Positions 1 through 17,447 of a stretch of 64,000 nt of DNA are shown here, piece after piece. Position 1 is the stretch's first letter; each line of letters starts with the position of its first letter. The notes below the pieces were generated by a model. It was given only the letters and a program-made list of their open reading frames with translations, was not told the DNA's origin and did not search any database. Source of the stretch: Blastocystis sp. Blastoise (Eukaryota; Protista; Bigyra: Opalinata). Position numbers and translations under genes: made by a program. The stretch is taken from NCBI GenBank assembly GCA_039096225.1, contig JBBPEB010000021.1, positions 248,001-312,000 of the forward strand, in the 5' to 3' direction.

Positions 1-581
1 AATCATTATATTACGTTTATTTAAATAACTTTTATGAATTAAAAATACTTCAGAGTTCTTCACATTGTGACTCATTTCTAAAGTTATTGACTTTAAAAAC
101 TCACAAAATGTTTAAAACAGTTGTTTAATTATTAATAAATACAAAATATATTTTAAAAATAATAAATAATATGTATAATGATTCAAAATAGTTTTTTAAT
201 TTTCTTTCAAGTATTGTTTTTAGTTTTTTTGATATCATTTAAAGAATTTATTTAATTCTTATATCAGGAATTGAACCTGATTACAATCAATAAATGATTG
301 TAACTCTCCATATAGAGTATAAGAAGTGTTATTAAAGTAATATATAATATATAATATATAATATATAATATATAATATATAATATATAATATATAATATA
401 TAATATATAATATATTATATATTATATAATATATAATATATAATATATAATAGATAATAAATAATAATATATAATAGATAATATATAATAATGAAAAAAA
501 GAAAATAAAAGCCAAACTGTTATTATTTTATGCAGCCGCGGTCCGGTGCCGTTAGGCCCCGGACCTGCGGCGTGACCCTAG
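1..581 (+). mobile_element. 3' portion of a non-autonomous Helitron (copy A; 5' end outside window)
   Basis: GC-rich hairpin GCCGCGGTCCGG-TGCCGTTAGGCC-CCGGACCTGCGGC (535-571) then GTGACC-CTAG|T (CTAG 578-581). Positions 1-330 are homologous to the 3' regions of the elements ending at 7318 and 13846. Confidence 0.85.
256..325 (-). ncRNA. tRNA-like cloverleaf, copy A
   Basis: Minus strand: TTCTTATA / CTCT-ATATGG-AGAG / TTACAATC-ATTTATT-GATTGTAA / TCAGG-TTCAATT-CCTGA / TATAAGAA. Four fully paired stems and a B-box-like GGTTCAATTCC. Confidence 0.7.
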
Positions 582-696
582 TAATAAAAACAAGAATAAT
601 AAATATATAAAAAACAATATAATAAATATTTAAAAAAAGATAATAAAACATATAATTAACAATATAATTTAGTATATATAATATTTAATAATATTT

Positions 697-1290
697 AAGC
701 AGCAGGACAGTTTCAGTCTTTAATTGGAAACCCAAACCAAGCCAACCTATATAAAGAGATGATATTAATTAACTAGTACTATTAGTAATATATATAACAT
801 TTTAAAATAATAATAAAATAAAAATATATACCTTTTATCACGACAATTACAAGAAAAGAAAGGAAGCGAAGACAAGGAACCATCCTATAAAAGATATATT
901 AAATAGTATAAGTAATAAAAAGGAATATAATTAATATATATACATACCTTTGATAAGCCATTCTCTCCAATTAACAACAACGACAGCAACGGAACCCCCG
1001 GAAACCTATATAAAGATAGAGTAAGTTATATAATATAATAATATATAATAAAGTAAATTAATATAGAATAATAAAATATAAATATATACATTACTGCTAT
1101 ATAAATATAAAGTGGGGTTAGTTATATAATATGTAATAGATAATATAGATGATATATACCTTCTTTTAACATTGATTCCTTCCATTCTAGACCTAAAGAA
1201 CCCATCTATAAGAGAGCCACGACCACACAAAAGAAGGACCAGAACGTTTAAGGAGACCAGCAAGTGTCAAAACACCAAGCAGAGACAGCT
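697..1290 (-). other. Spliced GT-rich exon series without a convincing reading frame
   Basis: Short GC-richer segments bounded by tatag| acceptors and aag|gtat donors (about 1290-1160, 1005-948, 885-833, 746-697), separated by AT-rich intron-like spacers. Confidence 0.45.
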
Positions 1291-1512
1291 ACTATAGAAA
1301 ATGAATGAATAGAGTAGAAAAAATAAAATATAAAGAAACAGCAAACACCTACCATCATAATAGTATCATATATAATAAAATAAAAATAAAATTTAATAAT
1401 ATATCATATTAATCATATAAGATATAATAAAATAAATATGTAATAAGTCATATTGCTTTTTTGTTTTGTTGTAAAAGGGAATAATAGGAATTTAGAAGAT
1501 ATGACTGAAATA

Positions 1513-14600: not shown

Positions 14601-15156
14601 AAAAAATTAAATTTGGTTTATTTTTATATTGCCGTTTCAGAAGTTCTTTCCGAAATGAAGCATCGATTTTTTTAGATGTTTTTGTATCTATATATTTTTT
14701 ATTTAAAAATTATTTAGAATATTAGTTACGTTGTTGTTTTTGCTTTATTTTATTTTCTATTCTCTCATTTACGGTTATTTTTGATGTTTCTAAAATCGAA
14801 TAGAAAAAAATAAACGAAATTATTTACTTAATTGATTTGGTTTTGGACCTCTTTTCTTTTTTGGTGGACGACCAGGTTTCCCACGATTACAGGATGGTTT
14901 TGAAACTTGTGAAGCTGTTTGAACTTCAGAATCTGTTTGATCTATTTAAATTAAAATTAAAAGAATGAAATATGAATTATACCAGGCATCACGAACCTTG
15001 GTGGAGGACCACGGACTATTGGAAGAGCTCTTGGAGGAGAAATCATTATACTTAAAATAGCTAAACACGTTATAAGTAACTTATGACTCATTACATACCC
15101 TTATCATAGCCTCCATCAACCGTACTTTCATTATTTTGTATCCTAGTTTCTTCCAT
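2642..15156 (-). CDS. hAT transposase with CGGBP1-like BED-type zinc finger; 7 exons, one 1-nt frameshift at about 3824-3831
   Basis: Spliced through phase-1 GT-AG introns: MEETRIQ...PGRPPKKKRGPKP...ICKACGVFLSLKASTIHDHILSRRHK (CxxC...HxxxxxH). Then GIDES (D1), intron 14102-4475, NTDN (D2), CLCH (CxxH), PTRW, intron 3782-3148, SSSYVERSFS (catalytic E, hATC dimerisation motif), stop 2642-2644. Confidence 0.88.
3199..3758. repeat. (AAT)n microsatellite filling a transposase intron
   Basis: Long interrupted AAT array inside intron 3782-3148. Confidence 0.95.
5290..6780 (+). repeat. Diverged internal tandem repeat (about 244-bp monomer, about 489-bp dimer) in Helitron B
   Basis: GAGATTCAA anchors at about 5313, 5802, 6290 and 6533; GAGAGTGGATGTGTGAAGGGTTGTGA at 5641 and 6130; CTCTAAGGGTCTTA at 5751 and 6240. 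Confidence 0.75.
7066..7133 (-). ncRNA. tRNA-like cloverleaf, copy B
   Basis: TCTTATA / CTCT-ATATGG-AGAG / TTACAATT-ATTTTAT-GATTGTAA / TCAGG-TTCAATT-CCTGA / TATAAGA. The stem substitution gives a G-U pair only on the minus strand. Confidence 0.7.
9333..9398 (-). ncRNA. tRNA-like cloverleaf, copy C (diverged)
   Basis: TTTTATG / CTCT-AGAAGG-AGAG / AAACAATC-ATATA-GATTGTTT / TCAGG-TTCAATT-CCTGA / CATAAAG. Compensatory changes relative to copy A in two stems. Confidence 0.72.
9455..9830. repeat. GA-rich (minus-strand CT-rich) low-complexity tract
   Basis: gaaggaagtaggaag-type units; followed by (AAAT)n to about 10080. Confidence 0.85.
10791..12090 (+). pseudogene. Micro-exon array carried by Helitron C (11 exons, mostly symmetric phase 1)
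   Basis: Exons 10791-10869, 10908-10979, 11032-11094, 11146-11217, 11289-11351, 11398-11470, 11545-11592, 11646-11693, 11758-11811, 11869-11940, 12053 onward. All GT-AG; three in-frame TAA codons and one 73-nt exon disrupt the frame. Confidence 0.65.
13562..13631 (-). ncRNA. tRNA-like cloverleaf, copy D
   Basis: Same as copy A except for two substitutions at the base of the third stem. Confidence 0.65.
13847..14091. repeat. (AAT)n microsatellite, Helitron target site in transposase intron
   Basis: Pure AAT array between the Helitron C CTAG and the transposase donor at 14102. Confidence 0.95.
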
Positions 15157-15685
15157 TGCTATAATTTTTGAATCTTCTAAAAAATTGTTTTAAAATCTTA
15201 TTATAATATATCCTAACCACTCTCTGACTATCTCTATTGTATACTTAAACAATTAATATTGAAATTAGTTATAAATCAATAATAAATAGTATAAATAAGT
15301 AAGGTGTAACTTAAAGGTGTTCTATGAAATTACCGTAAATATTAAACTATTTTCCTCTTATAAATCATTATTTCACTATATTATTCACATTTTTTAAATT
15401 ATCTCCTTAATAATACTTATATATATATATTTTATGGTTTTTACATATACTTGAGAGTTTTTAATTTAATAAAAAATGTTTAATTTAATCTGATTCTTTA
15501 TAGTAAACTCAAAACAACTCAAAATATACTTTCTGCTATTGATTTTTGACTTATATTTTCCTACTAAAATATTCAAATAATCATAAATTGAACGAATAAA
15601 TTGTGGGAAAAATAATCGTTATTTTTCTGGTTTAAAAATATAGCCAGAACCGACAAAATGAATTAGCAGAATATTTGCTGCCCAA
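14605..15685 (-). repeat. Right terminal inverted repeat of hAT element (1081 bp)
   Basis: Reverse complement of 1513-2593; contains the transposase start codon (15156) and the first four introns. Confidence 0.92.
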
Positions 15686-17379
15686 CTGAAATAATAAAAT
15701 AAACATGAATAATCTCATATCTACTAAATATAGAGAATCTTCATCATAAATGAAATGAATGGTTAAGAATAAAAGAGAAAGAGAAATTTTATTTCTATGA
15801 GGAAAATGGATATTGTTATTGTTATTTTTAATTTATCATAATTATCATAAGTAATACAAAAATTGTTTTATTTTAAAGAATTATATAGTTATTTATCATT
15901 ATATCATTTTATAATCAGTTTTGACTATGGAAGAGTGATTTTTATCCTTAATTGTCAAAATTATTTTTAGTATCACTCAGTAAGTATAAGTCTTTTAAAA
16001 AATAAATATAGGTTACAATACAGACTTATAGAGAAGACTCTGAAACTTCTATTTCCAGAATAAAAGTCATTTATATAATCCAGAATGATTGTCTGAATCT
16101 TCATTTAGAGTATTATTTTGAGTCACTAACTTTCAATAAAATGATTAAATAAAGAGAAAGATGATAAAAAAGGTCTAGAGTCAAAATTGTTATGAAATAT
16201 CAACTTTTTAATCTATTTGTGTAGATTTTCAATTATTTTAATATCATAATATGACTGAAAAGGAACAAAAAACATTTAAAGTCAATTGAGTCAACAATTG
16301 TAATCAAGTAAAAGTCTTTTAAAACCTCTTCATAAACTCAAAACGTATAGAGTGAGTGTTTTCCAGTAAAAATAATGTTTTTCATTTAAATAATATCAAA
16401 AACAAATCAAATTATTATTTTATAATTACTCAAGAACAACTCTTTCTAGTATTCAAGGACTTACTATTATCAAATATACGTATAAACAAACAAAAATCAT
16501 ATTTTATATATTTTTAGTTGAATAGTCGGAGTCGTGTTGATAGTTTATTATAAAACAAATGCAAAAATCACTTTTTTGTTAAAAACTGTCTTATATCGAT
16601 ATATAGTTTTATTCATAATTTATTTATTGTCTATAAACTCTGTGTATTCATTTTAAGTGATTTTTAGTGAAACTAAAATTATTTAAAATACATATTCTGA
16701 TTTCGAAAATGACAAAAACATATTATATTACATGCTTAGTGTTTTAATAAAGTTTAAAAGTTATTAAGATATCAATTAGTTAAAAAATATAAAATATTGA
16801 CAATCTCCATTTTTATGACTTGTCTTAAATCACGTTAAAGGTGTATGATTGAATAGTTGCATTGATTATTTGTATGATTCTAGTAATATTTTCTAAGAAT
16901 TTTGTTTTTTAACAAGAATAAATTCTTAATTTATTATTTATCAAGTTAAAAATGAATTTAAATGATTATTTTCTAGTGTAAAAGGGTATAGTTGTTATAT
17001 ATAAAAAAAAATTACGCAGAATAATTTGATAATCAAATTTTGAAAATGAGAATTATTATTTTGAACTAAACTAATTTTTCACATATACACATTATAAAAC
17101 GACCTGAATAATCTATTGAGAAGATTCTGTGTTTGATAATAAACTTAATTAAGTAATTGACTGTTGTTGTGTCTCTTTTTGATAAAAAGATAATCTCGAT
17201 TTCTATTTTTGATTGATCTATATATTATCAATGCATTCAATAATGAAATAAATACGTATGTAAAGAAAAAATAGTAATTGATCTAATTTATCTTCATCTA
17301 TTTGAATAGATAATTTTTGAAAAAATTAATATAATATATTTATTGATACCTATATATAAAGAATTAGTTATGTAATTGA

Positions 17380-17447
17380 CCTTAAGACAGGAATTGAACC
17401 TGTTTTCTATCATCAACTGATAGATACTTACCAATATAAGCTTAAGG
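17380..17447 (-). ncRNA. tRNA-like cloverleaf, copy E (most diverged)
   Basis: CCTTAAG / CTTA-TATTGG-TAAG / TATCTATCA-GTTGA-TGATAGAAA / ACAGG-TTCAATT-CCTGT / CTTAAGG. All four stems differ in sequence from copy A but still pair. Confidence 0.75.

Follow-up and report, generated by a model that had tools for sequence, protein, structure and literature searches.

A covarying tRNA mimic spread by Helitron and CACTA transposons in a gut protist: a candidate RNA-processing module

The AT-rich genome of this gut protist carries a family of tRNA mimics, a fold of ~68 bases present in more than 260 copies, and the members that we studied in the window (the whole 64,000-nt stretch analysed here) reside in DNA transposons of two unrelated superfamilies. 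Since the stems covary and the module is an island of conservation within its hosts, we regard it as a selected, non-decoding structure with the shape of a tRNA and not as debris, in agreement with the initial annotation. As to its function, we tentatively favour an RNA that would be cut by RNase P and RNase Z, providing a processing or termination module in the transcripts of the transposons. No published description of the family was found in the literature.

Identification of the family

Five minus-strand copies had been proposed in the window, and all of them were confirmed, with no other members present:

257..324, minus strand: tRNA mimic c1, type A; 96.2 bits with covariance model R1; MFE -22 kcal/mol, z -4.8
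7066..7133, minus strand: tRNA mimic c2, type A; 93 bits with R1; cloverleaf fold
9333..9398, minus strand: tRNA mimic c3, type C, 66 nt; 83.6 bits with R1; cloverleaf fold
13563..13630, minus strand: tRNA mimic c4, type A; 93.4 bits with R1; cloverleaf fold
17380..17447, minus strand: tRNA mimic c5, type B; 86 bits with R1; cloverleaf fold

Covariance model R1 was built from these five copies and a second model from 26 variants. R1 recovered exactly the five (83.6-96.2 bits, the next match being at 17.8 bits), and the second model found the same five in the window. Each copy folded alone gives a four-arm cloverleaf (z = -3.3 to -4.8), with none of 200 shuffles as stable. The antisense strand of the module scores 20-39 bits with the covariance model.

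Genome-wide, the core 13-mer AGGTTCAATTCCT has 266 exact sites against 0 for the reversed control, and at least 150 matches reach 71.8 bits or more with the covariance model. There are 18 identical copies of c1, about 16 copies in the score class of c2 and about 80 of type C. At no fewer than 10 sites a type C and a type A match are separated by 4.2-4.35 kb.

The module was not recognised as a member of any known family, ARAGORN predicting 0 tRNA genes in the window and Rfam giving nothing at gathering score. Around c1 and c5, neither RF00005 (tRNA) nor RF01684 (mascRNA / menRNA) matched even at E<=10. Both ARAGORN and Rfam do detect normal tRNAs elsewhere in the same genome.

Anatomy of the module

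The upper half is that of a tRNA: the acceptor stem (7 bp) stacks on the T stem (5 bp), the T-loop is of the TTCRA type (reading T54-T55-C56-A57-A58), and the pair G53-C61 and the GG of the D-loop are in place. The acceptor/T-arm stack and the elbow are the part of a tRNA recognised by RNase P, RNase Z and the CCA-adding enzyme. In the 26 variants the elbow (D-loop GG, TCAATT and G53-C61) is constant save in one subfamily (L041), where the T-loop begins with C instead of T. The T-loop sequence TTCAATT had been called invariant, which is true within the window; elsewhere we found TTCAACT (L048:3-78) and CTCAATT (L041).

The lower half is not that of a decoder. The third arm has 7-9 bp and a loop of 5-7 nt with free sequence; U33/R37, an anticodon arm of the usual size (5-bp stem, 7-nt loop), linkers 8-9 and 26 and a variable region were not found. 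Individual copies differ in this arm: c2 has a U.G at the loop-proximal pair and TTTT in the loop (an internal T4), the loop of c3 is 5 nt long, and c4 carries an A.A plus a G.U. The description of the junction as linker-less is right in the formal sense that the arms abut; however, 7 of the 26 variants have A.A at the second third-arm pair, and therefore the junction probably opens. A canonical tRNA was also considered, and it is ruled out by the blanks of ARAGORN and RF00005, the absent linkers and the non-decoder third arm.

Covariation and conservation

Covariation in all four stems, first suggested by the window copies, holds across the 26 distinct variants. Thirteen of the 24 pairs changed on both sides, with every helix represented, versus 2-5 when the partners were slid and 5.0 +/- 1.6 after shuffling. 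Paired stem cells amount to 97.3%, against 38-49% with the partners slid, and pairing in the acceptor and T stems is retained in 98.5-98.9% of the cells. Every compensatory swap originally listed is present in the window copies. Furthermore, at least four compensations are recent, independent and within single families, namely 23:43 (L019), 25:41 and 29:37, and 26:40 (type B), and at 25:41 and 29:37 the U.G intermediates were seen. Between the two CACTA subfamilies all the stem differences are compensatory or pair-restoring. The argument that two stem substitutions would be G-U pairs on the minus strand only turned out to be weak: counted by variant, 9 G.U versus 7 C.A cells do not clearly tell the strands apart, although the G.U variants are the high-copy ones.

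Across 16 Helitron subfamilies the mean pairwise identity is 0.93 in the module, versus 0.45 and 0.54 in the flanks, which puts its conservation on a level with that of the terminal hairpin needed for transposition. Similarly, the c5 and L040 subfamilies are 91% identical in the module and only 73% in the surrounding 1.9 kb.

Capture of host DNA is known for Helitrons and CACTA elements and the fold looks tRNA-derived, so that one could think of a captured tRNA pseudogene or SINE head in neutral drift, its apparent covariation coming from different tRNA ancestors. We consider this extremely improbable. The core of the third arm, the T arm and the GG of the D-loop are common to types A, B and C, which therefore have a single origin; compensations with intermediates occur inside young subfamilies; the module is a conservation island; the real tRNAs of the genome score at most 25 bits with the covariance model of the mimic; and no SINE tail, target-site duplication or solo copy appeared in the material examined. 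A tRNA-derived SINE was rejected as a classification, every examined copy being internal to a larger DNA transposon and devoid of a tail.

Host transposons

The module had been described as Helitron-borne and as an integral part of these elements. This describes well c1, c2 and c4, subterminal in true Helitrons, and c3, inside a composite one, but c5 lies in a CACTA element, so that the module is not specific to Helitrons. At least one autonomous Helitron family (L044) lacks the module between the RepHel ORF and the 3' end. The Helitron features of the window are:

532..581, plus strand: Helitron 3' terminus (c1 host), GC-rich hairpin plus CTAG, then T
4637..7318, plus strand: non-autonomous Helitron A, 2.7 kb, 5' A/TC and 3' hairpin plus CTAG/T; bears c2
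7343..13846, plus strand: composite Helitron C, 6.5 kb; bears c3 internally and c4 subterminally

Their assignment follows from A/TC at 4637 and 7343 and from the hairpin plus CTAG/T at 581, 7318 and 13846. The Helitron of c1 begins upstream of the window and has the exact 17-mer CTGCGGCGTGACCCTAG at 565-581. Helitron A has more than 20 related copies in the fetched loci; its first ~1.35 kb recurs in Helitron C, whose 3' hairpin and terminus are of the same kind. Helitron C is 95.6% identical to L047 (7336-11863) and 97.4% to L031 (11080-14095). Helitron_like_N gave 51 RepHel matches in the genome, most of them with uninterrupted frames of ~1,200-1,680 aa. Copies c1, c2 and c4 are located ~185-256 nt inside the Helitron 3' ends (254-257 nt for c1; 216 nt for c4, in Helitron C), on the strand opposite to the Helitron and facing inward.

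The host of c5 is interrupted by two other insertions:

582..24141, strand not assigned: CACTA-ended host body of c5, split by the c1 Helitron and a hAT element
1516..15685, strand not assigned: hAT-like element, inserted in the CACTA element; encloses Helitrons A and C

The TIRs of this host begin with CACTA, as in EnSpm-like elements. The right one was found at 24127-24141, where the sequence reads ...CCGTAGTG; the left one lies outside the window, 2.66 kb ahead of its first position. At least 35 copies of the element have a length of 8.5-8.8 kb, about 35 end at window ~24141, and inverted CACTAYGGACA... pairs 8.5-8.8 kb apart occur at more than 30 loci, including the present one, C24:245342 (+) / C24:272141 (-). 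Window segments 726-1515 and 15686-17505 are contiguous in L044. Within the hAT-like element, the ORFs at 2642-3178 and 3783-4472 have weak hAT-dimerisation and DUF659 matches.

Two further features accompany the copies of types C and B:

9455..9830, minus strand: CT-rich (polypyrimidine) tract, ~380 nt, upstream of c3 on the same strand, recognised by sequence and skew
17600..22400, minus strand: CT-rich repetitive tract, ~4.8 kb, upstream of c5 on the same strand

The second tract has a plus-strand GC skew of +0.8 and AT skew of +0.6 and consists of repeat families D2 and D3. Thus, in unrelated transposons, types B and C both have a long CT-rich tract ahead of them on their own strand. Homology among types A, B and C ends exactly at the edges of the cloverleaf and the hosts belong to two unrelated superfamilies, which is why we speak of a module and not of a lineage relic.

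The fixed position at ~185-256 nt from the Helitron 3' hairpin, together with a conservation equal to that of the hairpin, could also be read as a cis-acting DNA structure, a cloverleaf in single-stranded DNA that would aid 3' termination or strand handling during rolling-circle transposition. Compensation does keep pairing on both strands, the antisense still being recognised by the covariance model. However, the module is found as well deep in a cut-and-paste CACTA element (3 kb and 6.7 kb from its ends) and at a depth of 2 kb in Helitron C, only one strand has the elbow motifs of a tRNA, and the autonomous L044 family does without it in the 3' region, all of which make a role in DNA improbable.

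A putative RNA-processing module

Compensatory mutations maintain the shape, so the transposons probably exploit the tRNA-processing enzymes of their host. In the pathway that we propose, the module would be transcribed from the minus strand of the window within a longer transcript, either of the transposon or reading into it, and the host enzymes would cut at both of its ends. Cutting would give the upstream RNA a 3' end independent of poly(A), as might apply to the CT-rich RNAs of types B and C, while the uncapped fragment left downstream would end transcription running into the element, as might apply to type A. A small RNA of ~68 nt would be released. The fold, its covariation and conservation, the copy number and the host elements are observed, whereas transcription and cleavage to the transposon's advantage are inferred.

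Some observations are less favourable to processing. In type A only 185-256 nt separate the Helitron end from the module, and therefore any upstream RNA would have to originate either outside or in the (TATATAA)n tract. When the module is folded with 150 nt of context, AT-rich alternatives compete with the predicted acceptor stem. The variant ACAGG...CCTGG, propagated to 5 copies, contains an A.G without compensation. Genome searches for PRORP and for the nuclear RNase P RNA were blank, a result that is uninformative either way.

The main rival, which we judge rather unlikely, is an independent Pol III gene for a small tRNA-like RNA, perhaps with a trailer, or else a TFIIIC site or chromatin boundary, with the T arm as B box and the D region as weak A box. 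The sequence GGTTCAATTCC in the T arm, the most invariant part of the module, agrees with the B-box consensus in 10 of 11 positions. Upstream of type A there is a TATA-like (TATATAA)n. A run of T4 or longer lies within 15 nt in 16 of 26 distinct type-A flanks, versus a background of 19%, as would be expected if those subfamilies had a Pol III terminator. What keeps this reading a rival is that the subfamilies do not agree in terminator syntax: all 23 real nuclear tRNA genes considered have T4 or longer within 0-14 nt, whereas the first 66-90 nt after the module are free of T4 runs in the commonest type-A subfamily, and mostly the first 54 nt in type B (15 nt in L040). Besides, TTTT is internal in type C (about 80 copies) and in the c2 subfamily, and in no nuclear tRNA examined. 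The terminators are thus mild evidence against an ordinary Pol III gene, and the A-box match is poor. A pure DNA-binding role would leave unexplained the compensatory changes in the acceptor, D and third arms; a B-box DNA site needs none of this pairing, and its maintenance points to an RNA and not to a DNA motif.

Comparison with known systems

SINE heads, the 5' end of short tailed retroposons, and the vtRNAs of murid herpesvirus 68, with tRNA-like Pol III promoters, resemble the mimic in being tRNA-derived and non-charged, in their B box and in owing their multiplication to a mobile or viral genome. SINE heads decay without stem compensation. Unlike SINEs and vtRNAs, the mimic is internal to DNA transposons, with homology ending at the cloverleaf edges, covarying stems and inconsistent Pol III terminators.

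The closest parallels to the proposed RNA-processing role come from tRNA-like structures at which RNase P makes the 3' ends of MALAT1 and MEN-beta (PMC7583470). Like mascRNA and menRNA, the tRNA-like 3' modules of the vertebrate lncRNAs MALAT1 and NEAT1, the mimic is a cloverleaf of small size that does not decode: the acceptor/T-arm and the elbow are intact, while the sequence of the anticodon arm is free. In types B and C a long non-coding region precedes it on the same strand, and it may share the RNase P/RNase Z route to a poly(A)-independent 3' end. It differs in the lack of any sequence or Rfam match to them, in having no linkers and an 8-bp third arm, and in its protist host, where DNA transposons have spread it. 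No U-rich/A-rich triple-helix motif of the MALAT1 type was visible by eye just upstream of any copy. MALAT1-like loci have also been reported in lizards and fish, with dozens of duplicated copies in the anole, as cited in PMC10869381.

The t-elements of plant mitochondrial mRNAs are tRNA-like RNase P/RNase Z cleavage signals that define mRNA ends (PMC1920247). They too are tRNA-like folds that are not tRNAs, and the mimic might share their role as cleavage signals; they are, however, organellar, few, immobile and often short of arms, whereas the mimic is nuclear, transposon-borne and four-armed. Transposon RNAs from plants, fungi and slime mould contain ENEs, triple-helix elements that confer stability (Tycowski et al. 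2016, as related in PMC7583470). They are likewise structured RNA modules carried by transposons and acting on the fate of their own transcript, as the mimic would; in contrast, ENEs clamp the poly(A) tail and are not tRNA-like, and none was seen near the mimic.

Conclusions

From these sequence comparisons we suggest, with some reserve, that two unrelated transposon superfamilies share and exchange a portable module that would hand their transcripts to RNase P and RNase Z, creating poly(A)-independent 3' ends or stopping antisense read-in and releasing a small tRNA-like RNA. If so, the family would be a counterpart of mascRNA propagated by transposons, outside the vertebrates and of independent origin.

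Recognition and size of the family

The window has a GC content of 15-30%, belongs to a eukaryotic assembly of 33.3 Mb in 34 contigs and contains five minus-strand copies (c1 to c5) of a non-decoding, four-arm cloverleaf module of ~68 nt:

257-324, minus strand: c1, type A
7066-7133, minus strand: c2, type A
9333-9398, minus strand: c3, type C
13563-13630, minus strand: c4, type A
17380-17447, minus strand: c5, type B

Two covariance models were used, R1 built from these five copies and R2 from 26 distinct variants taken from the window and from 50 loci fetched from the same genome. 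Over the whole window R1 recovers exactly the five elements of the initial annotation, confirming that they are real, with scores of 83.6-96.2 bits (best non-member, 17.8 bits), and an R2 scan of the 64 kb gave the same five matches and no others. The cloverleaf that had been proposed also held, each of the five copies folding alone into four arms (z -3.3 to -4.8). The comparison with known families suggested there, carried out with ARAGORN and Rfam, gave no match for the copies, even to tRNA or mascRNA at E<=10. The real tRNAs of this genome are ordinary and score at most 25 bits with R1. A metagenome scan for CAGGTTCAATTCCTGNNNTAA gave 96 stretches, of which the 80 listed were scored and contained ordinary tRNAs only, at <=34 bits with R1.

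Genome-wide there are at least 150 R1 matches at 71.8 bits or more, and the exact sequence AGGTTCAATTCCT is found at 266 sites (reversed control, 0). Three main types, besides which minor variants exist, were read from the site counts and the first 100 places listed:

Type A: CCTGAT after the T-loop, ~144 copies
Type C: CCTGAC after the T-loop, ~80 copies
Type B: CCTGTC after the T-loop, ~30 copies

Homology among the three types ends at the cloverleaf edges. One divergent member (L048:3-78, minus strand; R1 score of 50 bits) has an (AT)n hairpin in place of the third arm, a 6-bp D stem and the T-loop TTCAACT, which suggests that the presence of the third helix matters and its sequence does not.

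Covariation and conservation

Among the 26 variants 97.3% of the stem cells are paired, versus 38-49% with partners slid, and 13 of the 24 pairs have changed on both sides, versus 2-5 in the slid alignments and 5.0 +/- 1.6 in shuffled ones. These both-side changes are found in all four helices. Some compensations are recent and retain their intermediates (C-G to U.G to U-A at model positions 29:37 and 25:41, within type A); further recent ones are U-A to A-U at 23:43 and, within type B, A-U to U-A at 26:40. The mean pairwise identity of the module over 16 Helitron subfamilies is 0.93, against 0.45 upstream and 0.54 downstream, and the only equally conserved part of these elements is the terminal hairpin. 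Similarly, two CACTA subfamilies are 91% identical in the module versus 73% overall, every one of their stem differences being compensated or pair-restoring. There are counter-examples: a variant with 5 copies has an uncompensated A.G, in seven of the 26 variants the third arm has A.A as its second pair, and by variant count C.A cells are about as many as G.U cells (7 and 9). Neutral decay of the copies is disfavoured by the covariation and appears extremely improbable.

Host elements

The initial annotation described the module as Helitron-borne. This applies to c1-c4, all inside Helitrons, but not to c5, which is located in a CACTA-ended element. The Helitron ends in the window are the following (slash, element boundary):

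581: 3' end, GC hairpin then CTAG/T
4637: 5' end, A/TC
7318: 3' end, GC hairpin then CTAG/T
7343: 5' end, A/TC
13846: 3' end, GC hairpin then CTAG/T

Copies c1, c2 and c4 sit 185-256 nt inside these canonical 3' ends, on the opposite strand. Copy c3 is found 2 kb into the composite Helitron 7343-13846, a 6.5-kb element that has c4 as well. The pairing of a type C and a type A module at 4.2-4.35-kb spacing recurs at 10 or more loci. The host of c5 has its right end (...TAGTG) at 24141; the partner of this end, CACTACGGACA... in inverted orientation, was located by pattern search 2.66 kb ahead of the first position of the window. Terminal inverted repeats sought inside the window only were not found, because the left end lies outside it. 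The pattern search gave more than 30 inverted pairs of this family genome-wide, 8.5-8.8 kb apart. Positions 1-24141 show transposons nested at three levels. Within the CACTA element lie the c1 Helitron, whose end is at 581, and, at 1516-15685, a hAT-like element, and within the latter the Helitrons 4637-7318 and 7343-13846 are arranged in tandem.

RepHel matches in the genome number 51, and the open frame of most is uninterrupted. At seven loci or more a type-C module and the Rep domain of a 1559-aa RepHel family are divergently oriented, the module being ~5.7-6.3 kb upstream of the domain; it may be part of the 5' region of the autonomous Helitron. The autonomous Helitron at L044:108-2401 has a different but related 3' hairpin and no tRNA mimic between the ORF and the 3' end. 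Between its CTAG end and the type-B module that follows downstream, in another CACTA copy, there are 59 nt; a placement of type B directly after the RepHel ORF was rejected, this Helitron being an insertion into the CACTA copy. The apparent RepHel neighbours on the same strand at two other loci, L037 and L011, are nested or abutting Helitrons as well.

Other repeats accompany these elements. (TAA)n microsatellites are present at every Helitron junction (4605-4636, 7319-7342 and 13847-14095, the one after 13846 being 250 bp long), produced either by Helitron insertion into TAA repeats (A/T target) or by repeat growth at the junctions. Tandem repeats of ~489 bp are located at 5303-6400 and 8009-8700, in the 5' part common to the Helitrons 4637-7318 and 7343-13846. 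A 4.8-kb GA-rich tract (17600-22400; CT-rich on the minus strand) consists of periodic units of ~38 nt and 9-12 nt, and its long ORFs, of 367-442 aa, result from the composition and probably do not represent genes; with a CT-tract ORF as query for encoding contigs, nothing was on record. At 46593-47702 (plus strand) there is an apparently intact Tc1/mariner-type transposase ORF, with a paired-box HTH and DDE_3, and no tRNA mimic nearby.

Structure and possible function

The conserved part of the module consists of the 7+5-bp acceptor/T stack, G53-C61, T54-T55-C56-A57-A58 and the D-loop GG. The acceptor/T stack and the elbow nucleotides are precisely the features recognised by tRNA-processing enzymes. 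In the anticodon arm both the sequence and the loop length vary freely among the 26 variants. The elbow motifs are present on one strand only, and the compensatory changes of the acceptor, D and third arms show that a folded strand is important and not a DNA-binding site alone.

A Pol III gene of its own, or a TFIIIC site, would agree with the T run found near some subfamilies. However, a run of T4 or longer occurs within 0-14 nt of every one of the 23 real nuclear tRNA genes, while the commonest type-A subfamily shows no such run over 66-90 nt and type B, in most cases, none over 54 nt (in L040, 15 nt). An internal TTTT, which no nuclear tRNA at hand contains, is also present in type C and the c2 subfamily. 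Judging from the uneven terminators and the internal TTTT, conservation extends to the fold but not to the syntax of a Pol III gene, which makes this alternative possible but rather doubtful. A role of the single-stranded DNA in Helitron transposition, which would fit the Helitron copies, is disfavoured by the CACTA host and seems quite unlikely.

Long CT-rich tracts precede types B and C on the same strand, in unrelated transposons. Together with the conserved fold and the inconsistent Pol III syntax, they lead us to favour, tentatively and from sequence features, a cleavage module over Pol III/TFIIIC: the module would be carried within a longer transcript and RNase P and RNase Z would cleave there. 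Both transcription and cleavage are what we infer. In the genome neither PRORP (PF16953) nor the nuclear RNase P RNA (RF00009) gave a match, and the same was true of the control queries.

In the c2 subfamily (7026-7175, minus strand) leader and trailer can pair in a 12-bp helix, UUAAUUUCUUAU / AUAAGAAAUUAA, either as a competitor or as an extension of the acceptor stem. This is reminiscent of the pairing between leader and trailer that is reported in the 3' maturation of MALAT1 (PMC8457004).

Two small contigs of the same genome, C9 and C12 (L051-L077), have identical dense clusters of tRNAs, oppositely oriented, and probably represent the organelle (MRO) genome, which either was assembled in duplicate or has an inverted repeat. 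Unlike nuclear tRNAs, those of the two contigs have internal T runs.

Relation to known systems

To our knowledge, long nuclear RNAs with tRNA-like signals for processing are essentially limited to two lncRNAs of vertebrates and the duplicates of these. In transposons the known structured RNA modules are the ENEs. The closest known systems are mascRNA and menRNA, with duplicated copies in lizards and fish (PMC7583470, PMC10869381), the plant mitochondrial t-elements (PMC1920247), tRNA-like Pol III promoters, SINE heads and the transposon-borne ENEs, and the module appears to fall outside all these families. The literature searched contains no description of a tRNA-like module in Helitrons or CACTA elements, in agreement with the initial statement that no equivalent was known. 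The finding also bears on annotation: in the paper on this genome (PMC12129017) there is no mention of Helitrons or of tRNAs.

In this stramenopile Helitrons and a CACTA element have spread a tRNA mimic, maintained through compensatory changes, to a number of copies above 260. Should RNase P and RNase Z prove to cut it, mobile DNA would be able to bring along a signal for RNA processing or termination that was taken from the tRNA pathway, and more than 25 natural variants would be available to study the requirements of those enzymes.
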